Positions 12,715-58,153 of a DNA stretch of 64,000 nt are shown here, in pieces. Below the pieces are notes generated by a model, which searched no databases, was not told the DNA's origin, and was given only the letters and a program-made list of their open reading frames with translations. Origin of the DNA: Macrostomum hystrix. Its lineage: Eukaryota > Animalia > Platyhelminthes. The stretch's first letter is position 1; the number at the start of each line of letters is the position of its first letter. Made by a program: the position numbers and the translations under genes. Where the stretch lies: NCBI GenBank assembly GCA_950097015.1, contig CATNEN010000039.1:7130001-7194000 (forward strand). Reading direction: 5' to 3'.

Positions 12715-14010
12715 ATGCCAACGTCAAGTCCTTCAACTCTCTGGTGGTTAGCCACGTGGCTGCTCGCCTACAGCTGCAGTTTTACTTTGGCCCAGCGAGA
12801 CTACGAAGCCGAACTTGTCAACTACCTGCGAAACAACATCACCAACTTCAGCCCATTGCTGCGCCCAGCTAAAACACCGAACAAAGTGATTGAAATCAGC
12901 GTCGGCAGTATGATTGGCGGCCTCGTGACAGTGGATAGCGCCAGACAGAGTGTGAAGCTCGCTGCATTCGTGCAGACCAGCTGGCCTGAAGAACGGCTCG
13001 TGTGGAACCCGGCAGCGTTCGGCAATGTGTCCGTGGTGAGCTGGGATGCCACTCAGACCTGGTTCCCGGTGATTATCATCTACAATGGCATTGGCGATAA
13101 TCAGCTACTGGCGCCCCAGATACCAGTTTACTTGAGATCGGTCTCGCCAAGTCTGTCAGTCACCACAGCGAGTTGGCGACGAGAGTTCGAGTTCATGTGC
13201 CAATTCGACATGACCAAATTTCCACTCGACAAACACGTCTGCAGTCTTGAGTTCTTCTTCAGCGACCAGGGTCACAACAATCAGCTCATTCGGCTAGTGG
13301 ACAGTGTGCCGCAATTCGACACTCTCGGTGTGTATAGAGAGAACGGCGAGTGGCAAATGATCAACGCAAGCTCGTTTGCACTTTACAAGAAGTACAAAGT
13401 CTTCGGGTCACTACCGGCTGTCACCCTACCGACTTATGTCTTGCGCATTGAAATACAGAGAGTTTCAACCTATTACTTTATGAACATCATAACGCCGCTG
13501 TTGCTGCTGACCATGCTACAAGTGCTCGTGTACTTTGTGCCTCTGGAATCCGGAGAGAAGCTGGGCTTCGGCATCACCATCATGCTCAGCTACACCGTGT
13601 TTCTGCTGCTGTTAGACGGCATAGTACCAAAGTCACAGGCAACGCCAGCCATCGCTTCGTTCATCACATCGGCCATGATTCTGTCAACCATCTCGCTGCT
13701 GCTGACGTCGCTGATAATGTGGTTTCATTTCACACCTGAATGCTCCCGAATGCCGGCTTGCATTCGAGCTGTTTTCGTCCGCTTTCTGGGCCGCCTGTTC
13801 TGTGTGAGCGGCGCAACTGCATGGCAGGTGGACCAGGCTCCCGGCGATGACGCCACCGTACGAAAGGCAGCCGGTGCAGCTACAGGAGCTCCAGTTGTTG
13901 CATCAGACTGGACGATTGCGGCCCACGCCTTGAACAGACTCATGGTTGCCTTGGGAGTGGCTGCCACCGCAGTTATTATCGGAGTTTTCATTCTGAAGCC
14001 GTACCTTTAG
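12715..14010 (+). CDS. Cys-loop ligand-gated ion channel subunit (nAChR/5-HT3-like, non-alpha, predicted cation-selective), intronless
   Basis: It has a signal peptide, LRP and W-x-E-x-R-L-x-W motifs, loop A WFPVIIIYN and the Cys-loop C-QFDMTKFPLDKHV-C. ENGEW and pre-M1 R...YY are present, followed by four TM helices with M1-M2 PLESGEK. Confidence 0.92.
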   Translation: MPTSSPSTLWWLATWLLAYSCSFTLAQRDYEAELVNYLRNNITNFSPLLRPAKTPNKVIEISVGSMIGGLVTVDSARQSVKLAAFVQTSWPEERLVWNPAAFGNVSVVSWDATQTWFPVIIIYNGIGDNQLLAPQIPVYLRSVSPSLSVTTASWRREFEFMCQFDMTKFPLDKHVCSLEFFFSDQGHNNQLIRLVDSVPQFDTLGVYRENGEWQMINASSFALYKKYKVFGSLPAVTLPTYVLRIEIQRVSTYYFMNIITPLLLLTMLQVLVYFVPLESGEKLGFGITIMLSYTVFLLLLDGIVPKSQATPAIASFITSAMILSTISLLLTSLIMWFHFTPECSRMPACIRAVFVRFLGRLFCVSGATAWQVDQAPGDDATVRKAAGAATGAPVVASDWTIAAHALNRLMVALGVAATAVIIGVFILKPYL

Positions 14011-33556: not shown

Positions 33557-36500
33557 ATGGCCGCTAGTTTAGCACTCATGACATCGCCACAAGCCATGGG
33601 CGGCGCAGGCGGCGGCGGTGGCGGGGCCTTCTCGCCGCTGACTCTGTTTGAATGCACCATCACCAATGCCACAATGCTGATTGACAGCATGGCGGCTCGC
33701 GACCTAATGGTGGCCTTTAAAATAGTCACCCAGCTGAATTCGCACCTAGTTGAAGCCATGGAGCCGCAGTTTGTTCGCATTGCCGATACGGCCGACGCTC
33801 ACGCGCACTGTCCTCCGCCACCGGCGCCGCCGCAGTCGACATTGTCAGCGGCAGCCGCGGCCGGCGGTCCAATGTCGTCCTCGCAGTCATCCTCTTCTGT
33901 GAAGCGGTCAATGATGCAACAGTCGGACTCCGGCGAGCATCTGTCATCAATGAAACGGGAATACAATTCTGACGACGACTGCCAAATTCTGGACGATGAC
34001 GCCAGCGGCAGCATGTTTGGCAGCTTCGACATTGTCAGCAACGTTCCCGGCGGCGGCGGCAGCGGAGCTTCTGGCTACGGCGCCAGTCCAGCCAAAATTT
34101 CACGAACTGGCGGCGCCACCGGTGGCGCCGATCTGAGCGACACCGGCGAGCTTTCGGCGGAATGGAAGGTGCGGAGACCATTACTGTATAATTGCACCAT
34201 CTCTGGATAGCCACACCATCTCTGGATAGCCACACCATCTCTGGACAGCCACACCATCTCTGGATAGCCACACCATCTCTGGATAGCCACACCATCTCTG
34301 GATAGCCACACAATCTCTGGACAGCCACACCATCTCTGGACAGCCACACCATCTCTGGATAGCCACACCATCTCTGGATAGCCACACAATCTCTGGATAG
34401 CCACACCATCTCTGGATAGCCACACCATCTCTGGACAGCCACACAATCTCTGGACAGCCACACCATCTCTGGATAGCCACACCATCTCTGGATAGCCACA
34501 CCATCTCTGGACAGCCACACCATCTCTGGACAGCCACACCATCTCTGGATAGCCACACCATCTCTGGATAGCCACACCATCTCTGGATAGCCACACCATC
34601 TCTCGATAGACACACCATCTATGGACAGCCACACCATCTCTCGATAGACACACCATCTCTGGATAGCCACACCATCTCTGGATAGCCACACCATCTCTGG
34701 ATAGCCACACCATCTCTGGATAGCCACACCATCTCTGGATAGCCACACCATCTCTGGATAGCCACACCATCTCTGGATAGCCACACCATCTCTGGACAGC
34801 CACACAATCTCTGGACAGCCACACCATCTCTCGATAGACACACCATCTCTGGACAGCCACACCATCTCTCGATAGACACACCATCTCTGGACAGCCACAC
34901 CATCTCTCGATAGACACACAATCTCTGGATAGCCACACCATCTCTGGACAGCCACACAATCTCTGGATAGCCACACCATCTCTGGACAGCCACACAATCT
35001 CTGGACAGCCACACCATCTCTGGACAGCCACAACATCTGACGATAAGCACAAAATATCTGAATATCTTCTGAGCTATAGCTATATCCATATATTACACCA
35101 CCAACCAAAAAAACCCGAATAAACCCATTTCTTCATATCACTTTGCTTCTGGAGTCACGACCCTAAAAAACAATACTTCTCTAAACATCCTCACCGAATC
35201 TGGGTTAACCGACCTCACACATGTTAGATATCTCATTAAACACGTGAAATAAACTGGCACACCTGTCGCATATCTCATTAAGCACGTGAATAAACTGGCA
35301 CACCTGTAGCATATCTCATTAAGCACGTGAATAAACTGGCACACCTGTAGCATATCTCATTAAGCACGTGAATAAACTGGCACACCTGTAGCATATCTCA
35401 TTAAGCACGTGAATAAACTGGCACACCTGTCGCATATCTCATTAAGCACGTGAATAAACTGGCACACCTGTAGCATATCTCATTAAGCACGTGAATAAAC
35501 TGGCACACCTGTAGCATATCTCATTAAGCATGTCATTAAAATCGCATTTCCCAGGGCATTCTGCGCAAAGCCTATCGCCAGCTAAAAGAGGAGACTGGCT
35601 CAAACGTATTCGATTTCGCCCTGCCCTATTCAGCCGGTGTTAACATGGAAGCAGCCAAGCTTGTCATCGACAAAGCCCTACAGATCACCAGATTTAAGCC
35701 CACTAACATCGCCGCCTGGACCAGTGAGTTCAATGAAAATTATCGAATAGGCATATAGCACTACTCATAGTATTAAATCTAAAAGTTTATTTAATATGTA
35801 CTTTAATATGCCTCAATTGTGAAAGGACGTTGCAGGGCTCTCATTGAGAAATGTTTTACAAAAATTACTTGTTTTTAATATATTTTTACAATTAAATTTC
35901 GCTAATTCGCCCACATTTCGTGGTTTAAAAACTAGTTTTCTTATGTTTTTCTAACCAAAAATTTTATGACCCACAAATTAAGTTGGTCAATCATGAATAT
36001 AAACTGAATTATGCATTAATTAACAAATTAATTTTTGTCTTTACAAATACAACTAGTTGTTCTACTAATAGTGTGTATTAAGAATCATTTTGATGGGACA
36101 ATGACAGCATGTTACAATGTGATCCATCTAAGCGCCCTGAAATGACTATATAATGAATGACTTATTCTACATTCTGCCTCTACCTACTGTGAGTAGCTAT
36201 CTTTGTTTCCGCCAACCGCTTCACCTAGGCATGGGAACTAAATACCTGAATACGTGGTTCTATGGCTTCTTGAAAGCCGACTATAATAGAAGCCTGGCTA
36301 AAAATCGCTTTCATCTCGTATTTGTAAGTATTTTCTCAAAACATTTAGCAATTGAGCCAGTTTTTACAACCGCCTGATAGTTAACAAAATATCTGTGTAC
36401 ACTGTGGCTATTGTAGCTCTGTCTACAAAGTATCTTAGGAATTATTATTCGACATTTTTGAAATATCGCCAAAAGACACTGGACGCCGGCGCCAGCGTTA

Positions 36501-39500
36501 TGAGACGGTTGCGTCAATCATTGGTGAGTTGGTTGACTTCTGCGTAGGCGAAATTGTTACTAGTTAACTGGGGGTGTAGTTTTCTCGGCTTCGTCCTTTG
36601 ATAATTAAAATCTCAACACCAAATTTGGACTCTTAGACTCAGACTGTAAATTCGATTGTTTAAAATCCCGCTGATAAGGTGCCGGCCAGAAATACCTGGC
36701 CATCTATTATAGAGATGTGAAATTTCGCAATAAGCAATCACTGGCAAGGATGAAAATGCAGCTAATCTTTGTAAATATTTTTTTTCTTTTGTTGCTATTA
36801 TTGTTAATTGTCTTTGGCATTATTGTTAATTATTGTTAATCTGCAACATTCTGCCTCACAAACAATCAAACATCCCTTAATTAGCTTCAATAGTTCCTTC
36901 TACATTACGTTACACATTTTGTTGCGTTTTAGAGCCAGCTTTAAAATATGTTCGATATCACTTTGATCACAATTTAAAGTGCAAATATCGATCTACGGAA
37001 CTTAACAAAAATTTAGCCTTGAATATGAAAAAAATATTTGTAAGTTTGGGTTTATAATTTTTCGAAACCTGCAGCATAATATCCATTCACAATGGGGGCA
37101 GTCGATATTTACAGTTACAATTAACAAAATTTAACTCGCTATAATATTTACCGACAGTCGCATGCCAAAAGTACACCGGGATGTACTACAGGGACACGCT
37201 AAGAAAGTCCTATTCGTTGGAGGCAAACAGATTAAAATCTAACAGGCTGATCAACACCTACTCAGTGCGTTCTATTGCTCAATTTAATTATGTTTAGGTG
37301 GAATTACTAGGAAAAGTTTTACCTGCATTGTCCTAACTATAGACAATCTCTGGATAGTATTTGCAATGTACCGCACGTAAAAACACAGATTACACAAATT
37401 ACAGACGCAACAAAGCGTTATTTCCAATACAACTTCTTCAAATCATTGAAGCAGTCACATTCGGCTATTGCTAGAGAGAAAAAGCTGCGTTCGCTGTTAA
37501 CTATGCACTCTGCGGCATTCACTGTGAGATACGAAGCCTTTAAAAATTATTGTCCTAAATTCGAATTCATTCAATGAGAGACCTCAGTCAGTGGTTTTGA
37601 TTGCTACACAATCCTGTTGTCATTGTACAAAATCAAAATCGTATTTTCTTACAGAGGCCAACCATGGCTATTTGCGTACAATTCTATTTAAAAATTCTCG
37701 TCGCAAATTTCAAGAGGACATGCGCCTGAGCAGCCTCAATACTTACATATCTAACGCCCGGCTTGTCCTTGCTGTAAGGCTTGTTCTTGCAACGGTTCCT
37801 TTAAAAAGCAAGCATTTCCTATCTTCCCTACTTATATAGTTAATAACAAATATTACAGGGCGTTTTCACGATTACTTTCGGCGCTATTATTCAATGAATT
37901 TAAAATTTTCGCACAAACAGAAGGAAACTTTTCGGTTTACAACACAGATTATCAGCCGAATAACGGTATTAATGAATCCTTTTTTATCTAACTTAATTAT
38001 ATAGCCAGGCCACTTTGATTTGACTAAAGAAGGCTTCTGTAATTAAGTGTTACCGCCATGATATATGGGCCAATGCTCACAGATTAAATTTAGGAAGAAA
38101 TAAAAATTCAAGAATTTATAATTTAGTGAAAAAATTAAGGAGGTCGCGCTTTTGCCTTCCGGACACAGAGTTCGATGCCACGTTACGGGCGCGGGTATGC
38201 CTGGGGCTTTTTGTAAAATTGACGATATTTGGGGTAACCTGTTTTACAAGTCAGGGGAGATGTTCAGTCAGGGCCTATGTTTGCTTATTCCTGACGATAG
38301 TGTGTGTTTTCATGAAATAGGCGGACTTGCCCTCGCGGAGTTTCGCTACTGTAAGATGATTTTTACTACCTGCAGCATCCAATTTAAATAATCAAATAAA
38401 TAATCCCCATACCGATACTCACATTATAATTTAAAAAATTAATAGAAATGAGTAACGCCTACTTACAAGACTACTTTAACGACACATTGAAGCGTTCCTA
38501 TGTTAGAAAACGTAGTAATTCACAATATAATAGAAGATTCGACTTTCAATTGCTGATAGTAAGTAATTTTGCTATAATAATAGTATTTGCCCAGAGACGT
38601 GTTGATTAAGGAACATTACTGTGACCACTTTTTAGTACAACGGTCTCTTCACTTAACTGACTCGTTAGACTAGAAACCGCCAAAGTGTTTATTCCTTTCT
38701 ATTCATTAATAAAAGGGAGATATGACAAAGAAATAAATACAGGGACGATTAGATGATTAAGAATATCTAAAGAATATAAAGTGCCACCACTTTATAGTAC
38801 AACGGTCGTTACGAATAAAACTGACTCGTTAGACTACAAAGCGCCACCGATATTGTTTAGAAATTGTGTTGGGATTGTAGATTTAGGAACGGTACTATGA
38901 CCGCATTGCAGCACAACGGTCTACACAGGACTATTACTGACTCGTTGGACTACAAAGCGCCACAAATCATTGTTCCAATACTGTGTATTGTTGAATCAGG
39001 AATTATTATATGACCGCTATGTAGGACAACGGTCATTTGGCAACAAGAAATTGCTATTAACCGACTCGTTGGACTACAAAGCGCCACAGACATTGTTCCA
39101 ACACTGTAATGGATAATGGATGAAGGGGTTGATGTATAAGGAACTGTACTATGCCCGCTATATAGCACAACGGTCATTTGGCAATTAGAATGCAATTAGC
39201 TGACTCGTTGGACTACAAAGCGCCACAGAAATTGTTCCAGCACTGTAATTTAAGGGATAAGGGGTTGATGAATAAGGAACTTTTCTATGCCCGCTATGTA
39301 GCACAACGGTCATTTGGCAATTAGAATGCAATTAGCTGACTCGTTGGACTACAAAGCGCCACAGAAATTGTTCCAGCACTGTAATTTAAGGGATAATTTA
39401 AGGGGTTGATGAATAAGGAACTTTTCTATGCCCGCTATGTAGCACAACGGTCATTTGGCAATTAGAATGCAATTAGCTGACTCGTTGGACTACAAAGCGC

Positions 39501-42500
39501 CACAAACTTTGTTCCATACTGTTTAAAAATGAGACAGATCTCATCTCAATAGTTCTAACTACAGAGGGTAGAACAAAGAACTGCACTATGACTACCATGT
39601 AGCACAACGGTCTTCGAGCACAGGGCTTATTACTGACTCATTGGACTACAAAGCGCCACAGATGCGGTTCCATGAGAAATATTGACAATAAAAGGACAAA
39701 AGTAGAACAAGAAACTGTTCTATGACCACCTTGTAACGGTCGATGGGTTTTGAATGAATAAAAAGGTTTAGTCGGTCAATGATCTGCATTGTGGCACTTT
39801 TTAGTACAACGGTCTTTTTAGTCAAAACTGACACGTTGGACTACAAAGCGCCACAGTACAAAGATCCAAACTAAAGGGTTAGATTTTAAAGGGTTAATTT
39901 TAAAGTAGAATGCAGAACTTCACAATGACCGCTCTTTAGTGCAACGGTCGACAAATCTGACTCGTCGGACTAAGAAGCGCCACTGTTGGATTGTCCATAC
40001 TAGAGACAGGGGAAGGAAGTGGATTTATCTGCTGATCAACGAGGGAATCTTTGACCACTTCACTAGCTCAACGAGTGGCTATCTCCGACTCGTTGGACTA
40101 GAAAGCGCCACTGTTGGATTGTCCATACTAGAGACAGGGGAAGGAAGTGGATTTATCTGCTGATCAACGAGGGAATCTTTGACCACTTCACTAGCTCAAC
40201 GAGTGGCTATCTCCGACTCGTTGGACTAGAAAGCGCCACTGTTGGATTGTCCATACTAGAGACAGGGGAAGGAAGTGGATTTATCTGCTGATCAACGAGG
40301 GAATCTTTGACCACTTCACTAGCTCAACGAGTGGCTATCTCCGACTCGTTGGACTAGAAAGCGCCACTGTTGGATTGTCCATACTAGAGACAGGGGAAGG
40401 AAGAGGATTTATCTGCTGATCAACGAGGGAATCTTTGACCACTTCACTAGCTCAACGAGTGGCTATCTCCGACTCGTTGGACTAGAAAGCGCCACTGTTG
40501 GATTGTCCATACTAGAGACAGGGGAAGGAAGTGGATTTATCTGCTGATCAACGAGGGAATCTTTGACCACTTCACTAGCTCAACGAGTGGCTATCTCCGA
40601 CTCGTTGGACTAGAAAGCGCCAAAGTAACTCTCATTACAATGAAGATGTGTGTTATGAGATGACAATCGGATATAGCCGTAGAATGCTTACTCTGTACAC
40701 ATGCTTAAATTAATGATTGCCTTCACGTGTCTCAGAGAAGCAAACTGCGGTTAAGAGAATCCGAAGCCCGGAAAGTCAGTGCCTAATGTTGATTACAGTG
40801 CTTAAACGGTAGGCTTCCTATGTACACCAACTGTACTCAGAGATCATTTGTCTGTGAACACAGCAAGCTCTACCGTCTAAATTGCACTACATAGACTATG
40901 TAAGGATGAGTACAGGTGCGTGATTCAACTCTTACCTTGTACACACATGTAATATAAGCATTGAGTGCACAAAATAAAAGCTGAAACAACGCTGTCGCCT
41001 GTGGACTATAAGGAATAGTAGTTTTTAAGTACAGATTTAGGAACCAAACTGTGGCCCACTTCTTAGTACAACGGTCTCACTGGCCACAAGAAAATAATCT
41101 TGTAGTAATAGTCATATCGGTTCGTTGGACTAGAAAGCGCCACAGTATTGTCTTCCAGTTTTAGGATAGCAGATTAAACATTAAAGATTGTACTTACCCC
41201 TACTAGGGAGCTGTTTTTCTTCTTCTGCTTCTGCTTTGTTGCTGCTGGATGACGACTGGTAGGACCAAAACTAGTTGGGAATATATAGGACTGCAGGACT
41301 GCTCTCATTGGCTAGCCAGGCCAGCTTACACTGGCTCTGTGTTCGCAATGTTCTACTCTCTAATTCTGGAGTCTGCTCGCTCTCCTATTGGCTGGCTGGG
41401 ATAGGGTACGGGGTTCAGGCTTGTCAAACCCGCCTGACCAATAGGAAAGTTTCAACTCTTTCTAATGCTAGTGAAACTGCGAATGCACTGACTGGTTAAG
41501 GTCACATGCGGTCACGTCCCTTAGGGCGCGAAAGCGCAGTATCTCAAACTTCCGTCTAAGTAAACTTTTTATAAACATTAGCAACACTTGCTCTATTATT
41601 ATTTCTTATATTAACTATATTATGAAGAACCTTCATACTGCATACAGAAAGCCTACAATCCGACTATGGTTTTCACTGTCAGCCTACTATACTCTATATC
41701 GATTCCTGTTTCATTCTATTGATTCCTAAAAACTCAATATCAACTTCAGCATCATTCTTGAATGATTCCATTCAAAACTACGCAATATCAATCACAGCTT
41801 CATTTCTTCCATTCCCAACTTCCTTATATCAATCACGACAAGGGACGACAACATTCCCGACAACTCATATCATTCCCAACTACTCTATATCAATCCCAGC
41901 TGCTCTATATCATTCCCAACTACTCTATATCATTCCCGACAACTCATATCATTCCCAGCTGCTCTATATCATTCCCAGCTGCTCTATATCATTCCCAGCT
42001 GCTCTATATCATTCCCAACTGCTCTATATCATTCCCAGCTGCTCTATATCATTCCCAACTGCTCTATATCATTCCCAACTGCTCTATATCATTCCCGACA
42101 ACTCATATCATTCCCAGCTGCTCTATATCATTCCCAGCTGCTCTATATCAATCCCAACTGCTCTATATCATTCCCAACTACTCTATATCATTCCCAGCTG
42201 CTCTATATCATTCCCAACTGCTCTATATCATTCCCAACTGCTCTATATCATTCCCGACAACTCATATCATTCCCAGCTGCTCTATATCATTCCCAGCTGC
42301 TCTATATCAATCCCAACTGTTCTATATCATTCCCAGCTGCTCTATATCATTCCCAGCTGCTCTATATCATTCCCAACTGCTCTATATCATTCCCAACTAC
42401 TCTATATCATTCCCAGCTGCTCTATATCATTCCCAGCTGCTCTATATCAATCCCAACTGCTCTATATCAATCCCAACTGCTCTATATCATTCCCAACTGC

Positions 42501-45500
42501 TCTATATCAATCCCAACTACTCTATTTTAATCCCAACTACTCTATATCAATCCCAACTGCTCTATATCAATCCCAACTGCTCTATATCATTCCCAACTGC
42601 TCTATATCATTCCCAACTACTCTATTTTAATCCCAACTACTCTATATCATTCCCAACTACTCTATATCAATCCCAACTGCTCTATATCATTCCCAACTGC
42701 TCTATATCATTCCCAACTGCTCTATATCATTCCCAACTGCTCTATATCATTCCCAACTACTCTATTTTAATCCCAACTACTCTATATCATTCCCAACTAC
42801 TCTATATCAATCCCAACTGCTCTATATCATTCCCAACTACTCTATATCAATCCCAACTGCTCTATATCATTCCCAACTACTCTATATCAATCCCAACTGC
42901 TCTATATCAATCCCAACTGCTCTATATCATTCCCAACTGCTCTATATCATTTCCAACTACTCTATTTTAATCCCAACTACTCTATATCATTCCCAACTAC
43001 TCTATATCAATCCCAACTGCTCTATATCAATCCCAACTGCTCTATATCAATCCCAACTGCTCTATATCATTCCCAACTGCTCTATATCATTCCCAACTAC
43101 TCTATTTTAATCCCAACTACTCTATATCATTCCCAACTACTCTATATCAATCCCAACTGCTCTATATCAATCCCAACTGCTCTATATCATTCCCAACTGC
43201 TCTATATCATTCCCAACTACTCTATTTTAATCCCAACTACTCTATATCATTCCCAACTACTCTATATCAATCCCAACTGCTCTATATCAATCCCAACTGC
43301 TCTATATCATTCCCAACTGCTCTATATCATTCCCAACTACTCTATTTTAATCCCAACTGCTCTATATCATTCCCAACTACTCTATATCAATCCCAACTGC
43401 TCTATATCAATCCCAACTGCTCTATATCATTCCCAACTGCTCTATATCATTCCCAACTGCTCTATTTTAATCCCAACTACTCTATATCATTCCCAACTGC
43501 TCTATATCATTCCCAACTGCTCTATATCATTCCCAGCTGCTCTATATCATTCCCAACTGCTCTATATCAATCCCAACTGCTCTATATCAATCCCAACTGC
43601 TCTATATCATTCCCAGCTGCTCTATATCATTCCCAACTACTCTATATCAATCCCAACTGCTCTATATCAATCCCAACTGCTCTATATCATTCCCAACTAC
43701 TCTATATCATTCCCAGCTGCTCTATATCATTCCCAACTGCTCTATATCATTCCCAACTGCTCTATATCATTCCCGACAACTCATATCATTCCCAGCTGCT
43801 CTATATCATTCCCAGCTGCTCTATATCAATCCCAACTGCTCTATATCATTCCCAACTGCTCTATATCATTCCCAACTACTCTATATCATTCCCAGCTGCT
43901 CTATATCATTCCCAGCTGCTCTATATCAATCCCAACTGCTCTATATCAATCCCAACTGCTCTATATCATTCCCAACTGCTCTATATCAATCCCAACTACT
44001 CTATTTTAATCCCAACTACTCTATATCATTCCCAACTACTCTATATCAATCCCAACTGCTCTATATCATTCCCAACTGCTCTATATCATTTCCAACTACT
44101 CTATTTTAATCCCAACTACTCTATATCATTCCCAACTACTCTATATCAATCCCAACTGCTCTATATCAATCCCAACTGCTCTATATCAATCCCAACTGCT
44201 CTATATCATTCCCAGCTGCTCTATATCATTCCCAACTGCTCTATATCATTCCCAACTGCTCTATATCATTCCCAACTACTCTATTTTAATCCCAACTGCT
44301 CTATATCATTCCCAACTGCTCTATATCATTCCCAGCTGCTCTATATCATTCCCAACTGCTCTATATCATTCCCAACTACTCTATATCAATCCCAACTGCT
44401 CTATATCATTCCCAACTACTCTATATCATTCCCAACTACTCTATATCATTCCCAACTGCTCTATATCATTCCCAACTACTCTATATCATTCCCAGCTGCT
44501 CTATATCATTCCCAACTGCTCTATATCATTCCCAACTGCTCTATATCATTCCCGACAACTCATATCATTCCCAGCTGCTCTATATCATTCCCAGCTGCTC
44601 TATATCAATCCCAACTGCTCTATATCAATCCCAACTGCTCTATATCATTCCCAACTGCTCTATATCAATCCCAACTACTCTATTTTAATCCCAACTACTC
44701 TATATCATTCCCAACTACTCTATATCAATCCCAACTGCTCTATATCATTCCCAACTGCTCTATATCATTTCCAACTACTCTATTTTAATCCCAACTACTC
44801 TATATCATTCCCAACTACTCTATATCAATCCCAACTGCTCTATATCAATCCCAACTGCTCTATATCAATCCCAACTGCTCTATATCATTCCCAGCTGCTC
44901 TATATCATTCCCAACTGCTCTATATCATTCCCAACTGCTCTATATCATTCCCAACTACTCTATTTTAATCCCAACTGCTCTATATCATTCCCAACTGCTC
45001 TATATCATTCCCAGCTGCTCTATATCATTCCCAACTGCTCTATATCATTCCCAACTACTCTATATCATTCCCAACTACTCTATATCATTCCCAACTGCTC
45101 TATATCATTCCCAGCTGCTCTATATCATTCCCAGCTGCTCTATATCATTCCCAACTACTCTATATCATTCCCAACTACTCTATATCATTCCCAACTGCTC
45201 TATATCATTCCCAACTACTCTATATCAATCCCAACTGCTCTATATCATTCCCAACTACTCTATATCAATCCCAACTGCTCTATATCAATCCCAACTGCTC
45301 TATATCATTCCCAACTACTCTATATCATTCCCAGCTGCTCTATATCATTCCCAACTACTCTATATCAATCCCAACTGCTCTATATCATTCCCAGCTGCAT
45401 CCATTCCGTTCCCAACTACTCCTATCATTCCTAGCTACATTCTATCAATCCCAACTACTCTATTTTAATCCCAACTACTCTATATCAATCCCAACTACTC

Positions 45501-48500
45501 TATATCAATCCCAACTGCTCTATATCATTCCCAGCTGCTCTATATCAATCCCAACTACTCTATATCAATCCCAACTGCTCTATATCATTCCCAGCTGCAT
45601 CCATTCCGTTCCCAACTACTCCTATCATTCCTAGCTACATTCTATCAATCCCAACTACTCTATTTTAATCCCAACTACTCTATATCAATCCCAACTACTC
45701 TATATCAATCCCAACTGCTCTATATCATTCCCAGCTGCTCTATATCAATCCCAACTACTCTATATCAATCCCAACTGCTCTATATCATTCCCAGCTGCAT
45801 CCATTCCGTTCCCAACTACTCCTATCATTCCTAGCTACATTCTATCAATCCCAACTACTCTATTTTAATCCCAACTACTCTATATCAATCCCAACTACTC
45901 TATATCAATCCCAACTGCTCTATATCAATCCGAACTGCTCTATATCAATCCCAGCTGCTCTATATCAATCCCAACTGCTCTATATCAATCCCAGCTGCTC
46001 TATATCAATCCCAGCTGCTCTATATCAATCCCAACTACTCTATATCAATCCCAACTGCTCTATATCATTCCCAGCTGCATCCATTCCGTTCCCAACTACT
46101 CCTATCATTCCTAGCTACATTCTATCAATCCCAACTACTCTATTTTAATCCCAACTACTCTATATCAATCCCAGCTGCTCTATATCAATCCCAACTACCC
46201 TATGGCAATCCCAACTACTGTCCATCAATCCTACTTTCTCACTATCCATCCAATTTACTTTAAATCAATCCAACGTTCTCTCCATTTATCTTACATTCTC
46301 TCCATTCGTCTTACATTCTCTCCATTCGTCTTACATTCTCTCCATTCGTCTTACATTCTCTCCATTCGTCTTACATTCTCTCCATTCGTCTTACATTCTC
46401 TCCATTCGTCTTACATTCTCTCCATTCGTCTTACATTCTCTCCATTCGTCTTACATTCTCTTTATTAATATTACAATATCTCCATTCGTCTTACATTCTC
46501 TATATTCATATTACACTCTCTCCATTCGTCTTACATTCTCTCCATTCGTCTTACATTCTCTATATTCATATTACACTCTTCTCCATTCATATTACACTCT
46601 CTCCATTCATATTACAGTCTCCATCTTACATTCTCTCCATTCATATTACACTCTGCATTCATCTTACATTCTCTCCATTCGTCCCACATTGTCTATCCAT
46701 CTGTTGTATTTTGAAGAAAAAATTATATGGGAAACTGCTGTTTTCATAGATTTCATTTCAACTAATTGAGTGCAAAAATGTGGTGTGATTCAGTCCGAGC
46801 TATAAAGTGTTGCTTCACTTCCTCTTTGAAGTGTACGATATTCGCCATCTCAGTAGCCCAGTAGTTAAGAGAAATGTGAAATTTCTAGTATTAGTGAGAG
46901 TATAATCTTCACACATTTGAGCATTATTAGCACATCGGGCCAGGCCTCCTGAATCCAGCTGTGAGCATTGTGAGAGTCATATGGAATCATTTGCCCATAG
47001 GCCTAGGTGCGATATTCACACAAAGGTCCCCACTGCCCCCACTGAGCTGTGAGAATGCCAACATTATATTAAAAGAATAACAAAACAATGATAAACTCGA
47101 GTCCAACTTTCTGTTTCTGACCCTGATTCTGGTCGCACGTTGGATGTTTTGTTGGTGTGTGTGTGTGTACCCTGATTGCGCAACTCGGGCATTGTGCCCC
47201 GCAGTCATTGTGCTGAGTGAGTCCCACTGTCTCCCCGCCCTATAGCCATATGCCATGGGTGTTAGCACATTTGCATTGTCCGCGCTCTACTGACCCTGTG
47301 GGGTTTTGTTCGTGGCTTCGCATTGTTTCTCATTTCCCTTTTTATTTCTCTAAAGCCTCCGATTCTCGCCTCGACTTTCCCTAGCTCACAAAATGGGTCA
47401 TTGTTTAGTGTGGAAATGCCATAGACAAGCCTAATACTAATCTTAGTAAAGCCTTATTGTATTATTGGGATGCAAATTGCTTCTATAGAGAATCATTAGC
47501 CTTTGTCACATTTTATTCTGCTTTAAGAATCCAGCAATCCGAAGTTTACTTTCGACGCCCCAGGGTGAAGGGGTTCGGTGGGCGGGCGGGTGTTTCTCCT
47601 TGTCTCCATGCGCGGATATTTTGAAGCTTCAGTGTGGATCAAAATAAAAATGTCACCTTTTTGTACAAAATTCTGCGTTAAGGCTTGAAATATATATTAG
47701 TAAGTCAAGATGATGAGACATTCTCATCATGAGATGAGACATACTTGTAATCTGTACCCACTGTACCCACTGCTCATTTTCTATTAACCATATCCGACCA
47801 ATATCTCATTACAATATAGCATGGTCCGTATCGCATGACCAATATTCCATGACCAATATCCCATTACAATATAGCCTGGTCTGTACCGCATGACCAATAT
47901 TCCATGAACAAAATCCCATTACAATATAGCCTGGTTCGTACCACATGACCAATATCCCATGACCAATATTCCATGACCAATTTAGCCTGGTCCGTATTGC
48001 ATGACCAATATCCGGTGATCAAATTCACATGACCAATCTCCCATGATCAATATGCAATGATCAGTATCGAGTGATTTTTATCTCATGACCAATATCCCAT
48101 GACCAATATCCCATGACCAATATCCCATGACCAATAGCCCATGACCAATATCCCATGACCAATATCCCATGACCAATATTCCATGACCAATTTAGCCTGG
48201 TCCGTATTGCATGACCAATATCCGGTGATCAAATTCACATGACCAATCTCCCATGATCAATATGCAATGATCAGTATCGAGTGATTTTTATCTCATGACC
48301 AATATCCCATGACCAATATCCCATGACCAATATCCCATGACCAATAGCCCATGACCAATATCCCATGACCAATATCCCATGACCAATATTCCATGACCAA
48401 TTTAGCCTGGTCCGTATTGCATGACCAATATCCGGTGATCAAATTCACATGACCAATCTCCCATGATCAATATGCAATGATCAGTATCGAGTGATTTTTA

Positions 48501-50396
48501 TCTCATGACCAATATCCCATGACCAATATCCCATGACCAATATTCCATGACTCGTTTATCATTACCCCTGACCAATAATCAAATGCAAGTATCATTTGTC
48601 CAATTTCCTATGACCAATACTCCTGACCGATACCACTTAATAATAATAATAATAATAATTGATTACACCTGCCCCAATTGGGTCAGATGTGCAGCCGACA
48701 GCCCAGCCGCAGCTAATGCGCGGCGCATCTGAAGGCTGCGTACAGCTGTTCAGTCCACGGACTGGGGGGACGCCACACCCACCTTCAATTATCCCAGCTG
48801 ATGCTGGTACCCATTTAACAGCTGGGTGAACTGAAGCAATGCAGAGTTAAGTGTCTTGCTAGAGGACGCAAATTGTTCGAGTGGAGTCGGGAATCGAACC
48901 CCCGACCTTCAAGTCGTGAGTCCGACGCCCTAACCACTAGGCTACAACCTCTGCTACCACTTAGCATTATTCAATGACCAATATACCCGTGATCAAAATA
49001 TCCTATGACCAAAATACATGACCAGTATCATCTGACCAAGGTCCCTTCGCCAATGTCAAGACAAGTACCTCAAAATGGCTCTATTTCTTACCCTAATATC
49101 CCATTAATAAATGCATCCTAACCTAAGCAATCAAGCGAATAATTGTTCCCCATCTTTAGTGCGTCAATTTCTGTCCATCATACCCCATGCTGCTTATCAA
49201 ATAATCCATTCAAGTCAAATTGCAAGTGAAACTTTGCTACTCAATCAAGCGTGTTACCAATGCTTGAAATTCTATTCGCATTCTGATTCTGATGAAGTTC
49301 CGATTGAATTCTTAATTGAATTAGGCAGATCTTTTCATGCATTTCAAGCTTTACATCCCACTGCGCATTCTGGGGGGCATCGCACATTGTGATTTTATTT
49401 CTGCCTAATTAATTCGAGGAAGGAATCTCAACTAGTTTACATGCAGGTGTTTTCATTTGACGAAATCATTGACACCTTTGCCTTTTGAAAGCAAGTGTTA
49501 GGAAAAGGTGTTGGCCCCATTGAGGTTGACTTTTATTTGAACAATATGGCTGCAGACTAATTTAATTTTTTAGTACTAGGGATGGAAGACTGAGGAAATG
49601 CTCAGGTGGGGAAGAACGTAGGAGAGATGCTCAGGTGAGGTTAGAAGGCAGGAGAGATGCTCAAGTGAGGTTAGAATGCAGGAGAGATGCTCAAGTGAGG
49701 GTAAAAGGCAGGAGAGATGCTCAAGTGAGGGTAGAATGCAGGAGAGATGCTCAAGTGAGGGTAGAAGGCAGAAGAGATGCTCAAGTGAGGGTAGAAGGCA
49801 GGAGAGATGCTCAGGTGAGGGTAGAATGCAGGAGAGATGCTCAAGTGAGGGTAGAAGGCAGGAGAGATGCTCAAGTGAGGGTAGAAGGCAGGAGAGATGC
49901 TCAAGTGAGGGTAGAAGGCAGGAGAGATGCTCAGGTGAGGTTAGAAGGCAGGAGAGATGGCGTGGTGAAGGTAGAAGACAGACTGACAATGTAGATTGTG
50001 GTTATTAAGTAGGCAACCGAGTTAAGGCTACGTTGCCATGGTAACCCCAAAACCCGCCAACGGCAGAAGCTGAACCGTCGCCAGAAGGCGTACGAGAGTC
50101 TGAAGCCGACCCTGGAAGTTGCCGCTCGCGAGCGCTACGAGTCTGTGCTGAACCGCGACTACACCTCATCCGATGAAGAGTGCGGCGCTGATCTAGATAG
50201 CGAGATGCGAGTCAAACAGCTGCCTTGGGAATCTGAAGAATTGCGCAGCATAAAGCACCAGCTGGATCGGATGTTTCACGACAGCCTGGCGGACGAGAAG
50301 CAGCGAGGCGAGATGACCAGACTAAGGCGAGATCCGGCCTGCCGAAGCTCCCGACCTCCGCCTGCTGACTGTCCCGCCTGGGCTAAAAAGGATTGA
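33557..50396 (+). CDS. Uncharacterised protein, paralog A (C14orf93-like C-terminal domain), exons 33557-34168, 35555-35723, 37655-37773, 50067-50396
   Basis: GT-AG junctions with phases 0,1,0 are identical to paralog B. The two share the N-terminal PLTLFECT..N.TMLID.M motif, exon-2 LR..Y..LK..F...LP, and last-exon KL.RRQKA..SS.E..RV..L.WES.E...K..LD..SSRPPPA...WA. Exon 3 is the least certain. Confidence 0.72.
34195..35038. repeat. 19-bp minisatellite (accatctctggatagccac), ~44 copies
   Basis: The period is 19, and it starts ~26 bp after the donor at 34169. Confidence 0.96.
35228..35535. repeat. 41-bp minisatellite, ~7 copies
   Basis: The unit is gcatatctcattaagcacgtgaataaactggcacacctgta, and the array ends ~20 bp before the acceptor at 35554. 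Confidence 0.95.
38600..41157 (-). ncRNA. Polycistronic microRNA cluster candidate: 16 pre-miRNA-like hairpins with predicted mature 5p consensus UGGCGCUUU(G/C)UAGUCCAACGAG. Predicted 5' ends are 41142, 40622, 40494, 40366, 40238, 40110, 39982, 39853, 39658, 39502, 39361, 39225, 39086, 38962, 38846 and 38682
   Basis: One arm is nearly invariant. The opposite arm varies mainly by changes that are G:U wobbles on the minus strand. Loops and spacers are divergent. Basal stems differ between units yet stay complementary. UG lies at -14 or -15 in most units and CNNC at +16 in 14 of 16 units. Confidence 0.85.
39975..40622. repeat. 128-bp x5 recent tandem amplification of one hairpin unit
   Basis: atctccgact occurs at 40081, 40209, 40337, 40465 and 40593 in near-identical copies. 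Confidence 0.97.
41192..41535 (-). promoter_or_regulatory. Putative Pol II promoter, short first exon and splice donor of the hairpin-cluster host transcript
   Basis: On the minus strand there is an E2F-like TTTCGCGCCC (41533-41524). CCAAT boxes lie at 41438-42 (on the + strand), 41391-87 and 41311-07. TATATAT is at 41287-81 and a consensus donor GGG|GTAAGT at 41197, just upstream of the first hairpin. Confidence 0.55.
41860..46215. repeat. ~4.3-kb 20-bp minisatellite (ctctatatcattcccaactg) with 200-bp higher-order units near its 3' end
   Basis: The period is 20. The variant block ccattccgtt recurs at 45401, 45601, 45801 and 46081. Confidence 0.97.
46275..46690. repeat. 20-bp minisatellite (tccattcgtcttacattctc)
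   Basis: Tandem copies decay toward the 3' end. Confidence 0.93.
47790..48550. repeat. 14-bp minisatellite (catgaccaatatcc) organised in 210-bp higher-order repeats x3
   Basis: atgaccaatatccggtgatc occurs at 48001, 48211 and 48421. Confidence 0.93.
48640..48954 (-). mobile_element. Full-length tRNA-derived SINE with (ATT)n tail and 9-bp target-site duplication
   Basis: The minus-strand head gcagaggttgTAGCCTAGTGG..GGTTCGATTCC carries A and B boxes. The central region is agcaagacacttaac..cacccagctgttaaatgggtacc, followed by an (ATT)n tail. The TSD taccactta is at 48631-48639 and 48955-48963. Confidence 0.9.
49595..49980. repeat. 30-bp minisatellite (ggagagatgctcaagtgagggtagaaggca)
   Basis: The period is 30, and the array ends ~85 bp before the acceptor at 50066. 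Confidence 0.95.
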
Positions 50397-55623: not shown

Positions 55624-58153
55624 ATGTCCTGCCAGGCCCTGCCGACCCTCCTGCCAGCCTCGTTGGCTCCCGGTCCGGGTAATTTATTGCCGCCCCTGAC
55701 ACTGTTCGAGTGCACCCTCAGCAACCTGACCATGCTGATCGATCGCATGCCTCTGAAAGATTATGTCACCTGTATGCGCCTAATTGGCCAGGTCTATATG
55801 CACGCCGTGGAAACCATGCGACCTTCATTTGACACCGTCTGCCAGTTCTACGAGATTCACAACGGGCCCTGTCCGACTGCCGCCTCCAGTGCCGCTGCTG
55901 CTGCCGCTGCTGCCGCCGCAGCCGCCGCTGCAGCTGTTAATTCATCTGCGGCAACCTCTTCAACTGCAGAAGGTACACTTCCGCTGCCTTCGCACCATCT
56001 TCAGCTGCATCGCCATCCGCAGCAGCAGCAGCAGCAGCAGCAGCTGTCTCCGTCCGTCATTGCCACGGCTACAAGCCTAAGCCAGCCAATCATGACTGTC
56101 ACAATGTCCTCCAGCAATTCAACTCCGCCGTCTACGCCTTCTCTGGCCTCGTCGCCCAGATCGCGGCCTTCCATCATTCCCATTGCTAAGCGACGCTGCA
56201 GGAAGCGACCGCATCGTCAGCAGCAGCAGCAGCAGCAAGATAATCAGGATGAGCTAGTCTACGAACAACACGCTGATGTAAAGGAGTCTCCAGATGCCGC
56301 ACTGTCAACATCCATCGGCCTGGACATCACTGGCGGCCTCGGCTGCCTGGCCATCGCCGCTGACCAGCTGCTGCACATTCAGCATCCCAAGCAGCGACAA
56401 CAGCGGCAGCTTCAGCAGCGCCAGATTCAGCTGACTGTGATGCCTCAAAGGCAGCAGCAGCCGACACCCCCGCCGCCGCCTCAGGCTCCGGTCTATGACA
56501 TTGTTCTCTGCGAAAACAACGACGACGACGTTGCTGAAGCCGACGATGCAAGCGACGGTGGCAATGGCGTCGCTGGCGCCAGATGCTTCGGCTCCATACT
56601 GAGTATGCCGACAACTGGTTCGACCATCTCTTCAACTGCCGGCTCTGCCGGAGGCGGTGGCAGCAGCGGCGGCGGTGGCAGCGGCTCAGCTAAGGCTGGC
56701 TTGCCGATGGATCCCGCCGAGTCCCGGGTTGGTTGATTGATCGTGCTTTCCAGCCTTCTTCCCTCACCCTTCAGGGCCGGTCTCTTCCCTCACCCTTCAG
56801 GGCCGGTCTCTTCCCTCACCCTTCAGGGCCGGCCTCTTCCCTCACCTTTCAGGGCCGGCCTCTTCCCTCACACTTCAGGGCCGGCCTCTTCCCTCACCCT
56901 TCAGGGCCGGCCTCTTCCCTCACCCTTCAGGGCCGGTCTCTTCCCTCACCCTTCAGGGCCGGCCTCTTCCCTCACCCTTCAGGGCCTCGTCCCTCAACCT
57001 TCAGGGCCTTTTCCCTCACCCTTCAGGACCTCGCCCCTCACCCTTCAGGGCCTCTTCCCTCACCCTTCAGGACCTCGCCCCTCACCATTCAGGGTCTCTT
57101 GTATTGTATGTACTGCATCAATGCGTCGCCTAGAATGGGCTGTTTTGCATTACTTTATATTCCATTAAAATAACGAAGCGCTGTCAACCAAAAAGTGCCG
57201 CAGTTAGCATGCTTCGAAGAAACCCTACTGCATAACCCGCAGGCCCTACTGCGCGAGTGCTACAAGGAGTTAAAAGGTGCTGGTCCGCATCTGTTCAAGC
57301 TGAACCTGCCATTCACGCACGCCCTGAATGTTGAAATTAGTCGCAAAGTGATTCGCGGCGCCATCGAGCGTATCGGCTGCTGCGATGACGATGGAAAAGG
57401 TGCGTCGTTTTGTTACAGTCAGTTACGTACCTTGACTAGCTTGCAGTGCCTGCTTTTATCTGCTTTTTTCAGAGGCCAGCTTAACAGACACTCTAATGAC
57501 TGCTATGAAGGATATTTTTCGCCGACTGAAGGACATTGGCAGCAACGAGCGAGCTCGCCGATTTACTTCTCGCATGAAGGTGCGTGCCTTAAAAGGGCCG
57601 TTTTAGGAATTTTTTACTGTCCTAAAAGGGGCTGTTTTATTACCTATAAGCGCAGTTTTACCTATTTGTTTTTGTGAAGCATATTCATATGTGAAATGAT
57701 TTATAATAAAAGAGGATATTTATCCCGTAAAAAATCCCACAGAAGCTGCGCCGCCGTCAGAAGGCCGCCAGCTATTTGTCGAGAACCCTGGATGCGCAGG
57801 ATGCGGCCAAACTCGAAGAGCTGCTCCAACGCGAATTCGTCAGCTCCGAAGACGAAGACGACGATAGGAAGCAGGTTCGAGTTCGCAGCCTGGCCTGGGA
57901 GAGCGGCGAGGCTCGGCAGCTCAAGCAGCTACTGGACGACTTCTATTTTCAGCGCATAGCCACCCCTGCCCAGCGGGAGAAATACCAGACCATGACAGTG
58001 CAGCGAGATGCCGACTATGTCAGCAGCAGGCCGCCTCCGGCTGGCGCCGGCGACTGGGCCAGGCGTGCAGCCGCGGCCGCTTCCGCCGTGTCCGCCGCGG
58101 CTGCCGCTGCTAATGCTGCCGCTGCAGCCGACGCTGGAGGGCTTGGCGAGTGA
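55624..58153 (+). CDS. Uncharacterised protein, paralog B (C14orf93-like C-terminal domain; polyA/polyQ tracts), exons 55624-56727, 57243-57399, 57473-57579, 57743-58153
   Basis: GT-AG junctions with phases 0,1,0 join in frame. It carries the same conserved blocks as paralog A (PLTLFECT..; FVSSEDED..VRVRSLAWESGE..LLDD..SSRPPPAGAGDWA). Confidence 0.8.
56755..57095. repeat. 26-bp minisatellite (cttccctcacccttcagggccggcct)
   Basis: It starts ~28 bp after the donor at 56728. Confidence 0.95.

Follow-up and report, generated by a model that had tools for sequence, protein, structure and literature searches.

Why should a 12.3-kb intron in a gene for an uncharacterised protein of the flatworm Macrostomum hystrix carry, on the strand opposite to that gene, 16 versions of one and the same hairpin? 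The locus lies in a 64,000-nt stretch of the forward strand of contig CATNEN010000039.1 (positions 7,130,001 to 7,194,000; assembly GCA_950097015.1), which is called the window here and is numbered from its first letter. An earlier note, made from the letters alone, had described the hairpins as a hidden cluster of microRNAs (miRNAs), antisense within the intron, and had pointed to a possible link to the flatworm family MIR-2160. Our analysis leads to a related answer: it is highly likely that the intron houses a polycistronic MIR-2160 locus read from the minus strand.

The array is defined by a 24-nt motif, GACTCGTTGGACTASAAAGCGCCA, which with at most three mismatches occurs 16 times between 38659 and 41142, always on the plus strand, where no copy is expected by chance. 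These are the 16 units counted in the earlier note, and every one of them folds into a hairpin, with precursors (pre-miRNAs) of 59–93 nt. The 5' cut was set before the U of UGGCGC and the 3' cut two nucleotides past the base pairing with that U; negative positions are given relative to the former, positive ones relative to the latter. The features of the array are as follows:

38620–38682, minus strand: unit 1, pre-miRNA of 63 nt with an 11-bp lower stem and CNNC (CAAC) at +16; its 5' arm, UGGCGGUUUCUAGUCUAACGAG, has the mutated seed GGCGGUU.
38780–38846, minus strand: unit 2, pre-miRNA of 67 nt; the 13-bp lower stem is of unrelated sequence (CUAAAC.AAUAU / AUAUU.CUUUAG), and CNNC is absent at +16, the nearest being at +25.
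38896–38962, minus strand: unit 3, pre-miRNA of 67 nt; CUAC at +16, U of UG at -15.
39009–39086, minus strand: unit 4, pre-miRNA of 78 nt; CAAC at +16, U of UG at -14.
39150–39225, 39286–39361 and 39427–39502 (within 39150–39502), minus strand: units 5, 6 and 7, 76 nt each, within a tandem repeat of 141 bp whose copies match each other at about 90%; lower stems of 8–12 bp, U of UG at -14 and CAUC at +16.
39587–39658, minus strand: unit 8, pre-miRNA of 72 nt; 13-bp lower stem GGAAC.GCA / UGC.AGUUC, CUAC at +16.
39712–39745, minus strand: a relic half unit (the 17th unit) between units 8 and 9, comprising a 3' arm and 3' flank (tgaccaccttgtaacggtc) without a 5' arm; no motif copy follows it.
39790–39853, minus strand: unit 9, pre-miRNA of 64 nt, better paired than any other hairpin of the array (z = -8.0 in a 90-nt scan of the intron); CGAC at +16.
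39924–39982, minus strand: unit 10, pre-miRNA of 59 nt; 5' arm UGGCGCUUCUUAGUCCGACGAG, 13-bp lower stem, CUAC at +16.
40050–40110, 40178–40238, 40306–40366 and 40434–40494 (within 40050–40494), minus strand: units 11–14, 128-bp tandem copies.
40562–40622, minus strand: unit 15, pre-miRNA of 61 nt; 11-bp lower stem UAAUGAG / CUCGUUG, CAGC at +16.
41050–41142, minus strand: unit 16, pre-miRNA of 93 nt with a long loop and an 11-bp lower stem, without CNNC at +16; presumably the first hairpin of the transcript.

According to MirGeneDB 3.0, platyhelminth miRNA loops have no evident upper limit, and long ones are usual. A scan of the whole intron for hairpins of -30 kcal/mol or lower per 90 nt revealed a cluster at 39.0–41.0 kb, with 13 intervals on the minus strand versus one on the plus strand; the sole others that strong are found at 41.4 kb (z -1.2, plus strand) and 48.6–49.0 kb, the latter in a patch rich in G+C. 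Could the units be the inverted-repeat ends of a dispersed transposon of the miniature inverted-repeat type, piled up here? The earlier note had named this as an observation that would speak against its reading, and the units are indeed hairpins. The motif search of the 220-Mb assembly, however, found only one doubtful two-mismatch match outside the array, a covariance model (R1) trained on 11 distinct units recovered all 16 units and no other match, and BLAST searches with the spacers and with the segment upstream of unit 16 showed them to be single-copy in the genome. All three approaches thus lead to one locus only, which argues that the units are not transposon ends, and we regard this explanation as extremely improbable.

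Which strand forms the functional hairpin? The earlier note had proposed minus-strand RNA, and the folds confirm it: the minus-strand RNA is more stable than the plus-strand RNA in all 16 units (by 2–13 kcal/mol), and for the 11 distinct units its folds comprise 254 Watson-Crick pairs, 41 G:U pairs and 2 A.C mismatches, versus 223, 16 and 8, respectively, on the plus strand. It is the minus-strand RNA on which selection acts. If a 22-pair structure is fixed, 94.6% of the duplex cells pair, versus 26–70% after sliding of the partners; three pairs are altered on both sides, and one-sided changes are mostly exchanges between G:C and G:U or between U:A and U:G. Basal stems that differ between units and are still complementary had also been noticed before, and were found again in units 2, 8, 9 and 15, the lower stems of which are unlike the common GGAAC/GUUCC type in sequence, with pairing kept. 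Among the first 24 nt of the 5' arm 18–22 are paired in every unit, while a MirGeneDB-type criterion calls for at least 16 pairs. Mean pairwise identity over the 10 unit lineages falls from 0.90 in the 5' arm to 0.69 in the 3' arm, 0.56–0.57 in the flanks and 0.52 in the loop (shuffled 22-mers: 0.45), in the order of arms and loop that the earlier note had given.

Read on the minus strand, the conserved arm is the 5' one, where MIR-2160 has its mature sequence, and it is the predicted loaded arm. It reads UGGCGCUUU(G/C)UAGUCCAACGAG and exists in eight sequence variants. The MIR-2160 seed GGCGCUU (positions 2–8 of a mature RNA starting with U) is present in 15 of the 16 units, unit 1 having GGCGGUU, and the hexamer count reported earlier (GGCGCU in 15 of 16, GGCGGU in unit 1) was reproduced. 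Published members of the family begin with UGGCGCUU (PMC3930507, PMC7878377) and are located in the 5' arm (PMC4156656); the link that the earlier note had made is correct. These members include sma-miR-n3/8437, UGGCGCUUAGUAGAAUGUCACCG (PMC3930507), Fhe-Mir-2160-P1, TGGCGCTTAGTTATATGTCATCG, and Fhe-Mir-2160-P2, AGGCGCTTTGATTGTCCACACTGA (PMC7878377), the last being identical to the mature sequence of the array at positions 2–10, as well as egr-new-7, UGGCGCUUUCUAACUUUACUGA, the first 12 nt of which are identical to those of units 11–16; egr-new-7 comes from a multi-copy cluster, has been annotated as 5P and, with 19,000 reads, belongs to the most abundant miRNAs in Echinococcus granulosus (PMC4156656 supplement). 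The family occurs in Platyhelminthes, and the host gene, too, has its best relative there (Macrostomum lignano PAA91937.1).

Searches for further relatives added little. A search of this genome for the P1-type mature sequence (UGGCGCUUAGU...) gave matches at chance level and no copy, and a pattern combining the seed with its pairing partner yielded 34 matches in the whole genome versus 27 for the reversed control, with no convincing extra MIR-2160 hairpin; one candidate (L028) was rejected as a GC-rich hairpin of chance level. A literature search with the exact mature sequences of the array and of a second hairpin family described below returned nothing relevant, and a metagenome scan for the mature sequence returned 0 matches. 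The supplementary data of the small-RNA paper on M. lignano contain no GGCGCUU sequence; that study (data: Zhou et al. 2015, PMC4604429) retained only sequences identical to miRBase entries. Macrostomum is absent from the flatworms named in MirGeneDB 3.0.

Do the flanks look like those of primary miRNAs (pri-miRNAs)? CNNC begins at +16 in 14 of the 16 units (all except 2 and 16), in the forms CAAC, CUAC, CAUC, CGAC and CAGC, exactly as had been claimed; counted by lineage, it is at +16 in 8 of 10, any other offset being found in at most 2 of 10. The U of the basal UG is at -14 in units 4–8 and at -15 in eight units (3, 9–14 and 16), and is lacking in units 1, 2 and 15, which agrees with the five units at -14 and most others at -15 of the earlier count. 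Twelve units exhibit a lower stem of 8–13 pairs, which extends to between -13 and -18 relative to the predicted 5' cut; about 11–13 bp would be expected of a canonical Microprocessor substrate. The assignment of all units to one seed family is supported, and so is an anatomy of the pri-miRNA kind. Drosha and Pasha have been reported in M. lignano.

The intron itself rests on two kinds of evidence:

37774–50066, plus strand: host-gene intron of 12.3 kb with the array inside on the opposite strand, based on junctions in RNA contigs and on tblastn with PAA91937.1.

The contigs of four public runs (X1–X4; Logan contigs, strandless, depth 3–5) have loose ends that map exactly to 35694–35723 and 50067–50096, and such exon-exon junctions indicate that the runs are RNA-derived and that the intron is real. 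Spliced contigs lead from 35723 via alternative exons to 50067, and tblastn with the M. lignano orthologue (68–89% identity per exon) places exons at 33557–34168, ~35552–35723, 37154–37264 or 37651–37782, and 50031–50390, so that the antisense position claimed in the earlier note is confirmed. The RNA contigs also run unspliced across the array, at low depth and past the putative minus-strand start, to 41643; the array is transcribed in some form.

Several observations weigh against a minus-strand miRNA locus. As paralogues, the units do not provide fully independent counts of CNNC and UG; the basal UG is absent from both mir-71 hairpins of this genome; a lower stem is missing in four of the 16 units (11–14); the unspliced, strandless coverage over the array could be due to host pre-mRNA alone; and a search of Rfam at a permissive threshold gave nothing above the gathering score of any family. 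The sub-threshold Rfam matches to MIR814, mir-5014 and mir-3613 are generic hairpin matches and not meaningful.

Since the flanks are paralogous, conserved miRNAs of the same genome were checked as controls:

C7:9827234, C39:15963536, C39:6334119 and C41:2924745 (L069, L070, L075 and L076, respectively): mir-71/mir-2 and mir-124 loci, with CNNC at +16 to +18.

All eight control hairpins have CNNC in this range: the two mir-71 and two mir-124 loci at +16, and the four mir-2 hairpins beside mir-71 at +18 if their mature RNA is taken as 22 nt. The cue is therefore typical of pri-miRNAs here, the array uses the same register, and the comparison suggests that CNNC serves as a Microprocessor cue in this flatworm. 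The basal UG, which the earlier note had treated as an exact determinant on a par with CNNC, was overstated in view of the two mir-71 controls and may be just the start of the conserved UGGAAC stem. The pattern for miR-10 had no match in the genome and was dropped from the controls. The two mir-124 loci show no simple hairpin in a 110-nt window and may have long loops.

The host pre-mRNA necessarily includes the plus-strand hairpins. Or perhaps these are the actual substrates, with a 3'-arm product such as ACUCGUUGGACUACAAAGCGCC, or processing acts on both strands, as it does at bidirectional miRNA loci? That the unspliced contigs extend beyond the putative minus-strand start and that unit 9 folds well on the plus strand too would fit, yet we judge this very improbable, as the plus hairpins are the weaker ones in every unit and turn the 41 G:U pairs into mismatches, the conserved arm, read on the minus strand, begins with precisely the seed of a known family and is the 5' arm, as it should be, and CNNC takes the species-typical +16 only when the minus strand is read. 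It is equally hard to see in the array a structured tandem repeat or hairpin satellite that has no small-RNA product or feeds small interfering or PIWI-interacting RNAs through convergent transcription of the host strand and its antisense: a neutral satellite would not hold one arm at 0.90 against 0.52 for the loops, pairing has been kept through G:U-type changes and replacements of whole stems, CNNC stands at the offset of the conserved miRNAs of this genome, and the seed equals that of MIR-2160. We consider a satellite very doubtful, even in a window rich in tandem repeats and for an array that arose partly by recent 128-bp and 141-bp tandem duplications.

Not all members of the proposed minus-strand MIR-2160 array are equivalent. 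Units 11–14 are 99% identical, and each has its 5' flank in common with unit 10 and shares body and 3' flank with unit 15, which is their parent. Their minimum-energy folds contain 0 lower-stem pairs, with even UGG unpaired, and they score 45 bits with the covariance model versus 55–89 for the remaining units. Unequal crossover inside the conserved mature sequence would explain them most simply; recombination at that place has left the flanks mismatched, so that these units are predicted to be, probably, poor substrates of Microprocessor. As they are chimeric and lack a lower stem, about 12 hairpins are canonical rather than 16, and the earlier claim of 16 hairpins with Microprocessor anatomy holds for the former and fails for units 11–14.

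The region contains more than the 16 units. The 400-nt stretch between units 15 and 16 harbours three strong hairpins of another kind, and a module resembling a promoter is found upstream of unit 16; both had escaped the earlier note. CNNC positions in the hairpins were determined by eye for an assumed 22-nt 3' product:

40662–40752, minus strand: extra hairpin C, 3' arm UGUGUACAGAGUAAGCAUUCUA, CNNC at +18; the energies leave its strand undecided (plus -37.5 versus minus -35.6 kcal/mol).
40790–40895, minus strand: extra hairpin B, 3' arm GGUGUACAUAGGAAGCCUACCG, CNNC (CAAC) at +16; minus -44.5 versus plus -30.9 kcal/mol, z = -5.7.
40915–41000, minus strand: extra hairpin A, 3' arm UGUGUACAAGGUAAGAGUUGAA, CNNC (CAUC) at +16; minus -39.5 versus plus -26.7 kcal/mol, z about -6.
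41192–41442, minus strand: promoter-like module 40–300 nt upstream of unit 16, with CCAAT boxes at 41391–41387 and 41311–41307, an inverted CCAAT at 41442–41438, TATATA at 41287–41282 and a donor-like GGTAAGT site at 41198–41192.

The 3' arms of the three hairpins share (U/G)GUGUACA..G.AAG and their 5' arms differ. A literature search revealed no published miRNA with these sequences, and the hairpins probably represent a second, co-transcribed miRNA family. The three CCAAT boxes lie within 161 nt, where 0.42 would be expected, and the module looks like a Pol II promoter followed by a short first exon. No joint from the GGTAAGT site was found in the RNA contigs. No AATAAA polyadenylation signal for the presumed transcript was found on the minus strand in the interval 35800–38620. 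Directly upstream of the module there is a 20-bp tandem array (41852–42998; 57 copies, 90% matches); other long minisatellites of the window lie at 28–32 kb, 34–35 kb and 50.5–52.4 kb.

The host gene shows an unusual organisation of its own, with six mutually exclusive alternative exons between 36229 and 37773 on the plus strand:

36229–~36323, 36417–36523, 36679–36770, 36933–37039, 37158–37264 and 37655–37773, plus strand: alternative exons, encoding paralogous segments of 30–40 aa.

According to the RNA contigs, the exon starts join 35723 upstream and the mapped exon ends join 50067 downstream; the five exons with mapped ends are bounded by AG..GT and have one common phase. No Pfam domain was found in the host protein, the family of which has many Macrostomum paralogues; one of them, compact and 35–40% identical, is located 5 kb downstream (55642–58057, plus strand) and has neither the long intron nor the exon array. 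Elsewhere in the window an apparently intron-less gene (12715–14010, plus strand) encodes a 431-aa Cys-loop ligand-gated ion channel (Neur_chan_LBD and Neur_chan_memb).

How would the minus-strand MIR-2160 locus work? The sequence data show its anatomy, the bias towards one strand, its confinement to one locus, the seed that it has in common with published MIR-2160 members and its place in the host intron; that the minus strand is transcribed and its RNA processed, and which arm and promoter are used, we infer. Transcription would most likely start some 110 nt ahead of unit 16, at the CCAAT/TATA module, and give an RNA in which about 12 units have the full pri-miRNA build, with 8–13 pairs in the lower stem, about 22 bp in the upper stem and a CNNC at +16. 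Drosha and Pasha would cut before the U of UGGCGC, Dicer would follow, and the products would be 5'-arm miRNAs of about 22 nt in eight sequence variants. Units 11–14 would be very recent products of unequal crossover with mismatched flanks, and the three GUGUACA-sharing hairpins between units 15 and 16 would be a probable second family on the same transcript. Many same-seed hairpins in tandem on one presumed transcript imply a high dosage. A further-reaching picture, which we offer only tentatively, is that the array is the one source of GGCGCUU in Macrostomum, a high-dosage battery for neoblasts or the early embryo in the manner of miR-430 or miR-302, driven by its own promoter of the NF-Y/TATA type and evolving by birth and death, with dead chimeras made by crossover. 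The only link to this picture is the enrichment in neoblasts that has been published for sme-miR-2160 of planarians. In tapeworms MIR-2160 is reported to be highly expressed (PMC4156656).

Macrostomum is a model for regeneration and stem cells, the miRNA genes of which are missing from the curated database. If our prediction is true, the 16-copy array is the sole detected source of this seed and places MIR-2160 in Macrostomum, a lineage outside the curated flatworm set. A role in stem cells could then be probed by knock-out or knock-down at one compact locus, and the array would be a clear example of the growth of a miRNA array, in which four fresh copies are predicted to be dead for processing because of mismatched flanks.

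How does the array compare with known systems? It shares the seed, the 5' arm as (here predicted) site of the mature RNA, the flatworm host and multi-copy clusters with the published members of MIR-2160 (sme-miR-2160; sma-miR-8437/n3; Fhe-Mir-2160-P1/P2; egr-new-7, 12, 15, 22, 24 and 61). Clusters of this kind are not new, contrary to what the word "hidden" in the earlier note implied: Echinococcus has two clusters with the MIR-2160 seed, of four and two copies, and multiple copies have been cited for Schmidtea (PMC4156656). The present array stands out by its unusually high copy number and by its genus. The array differs from its published relatives in the 3' half of the mature sequence (GUCCAACGAG), which is not common to them, and in its 16 tandem copies at one locus, above any published case that we found; it would be the largest MIR-2160 array among those found described.

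Same-seed tandem arrays of hairpins are known from zebrafish (miR-430) and Xenopus (miR-427), with tens to hundreds of copies. The present locus resembles them in its many tandem hairpins of one seed, in a single presumed transcript and in growth by tandem duplication, but its seed is unrelated and its 16 copies are far fewer. The protostome mir-71/mir-2 cluster, present in this genome at L069 and L070, is similar to the proposed locus as a polycistron of two families with hairpins about 100–190 nt apart and CNNC at +16 to +18. That cluster, however, is ancient, comprises 2–4 hairpins and is conserved across phyla, whereas the MIR-2160 array is family-restricted and still expanding.

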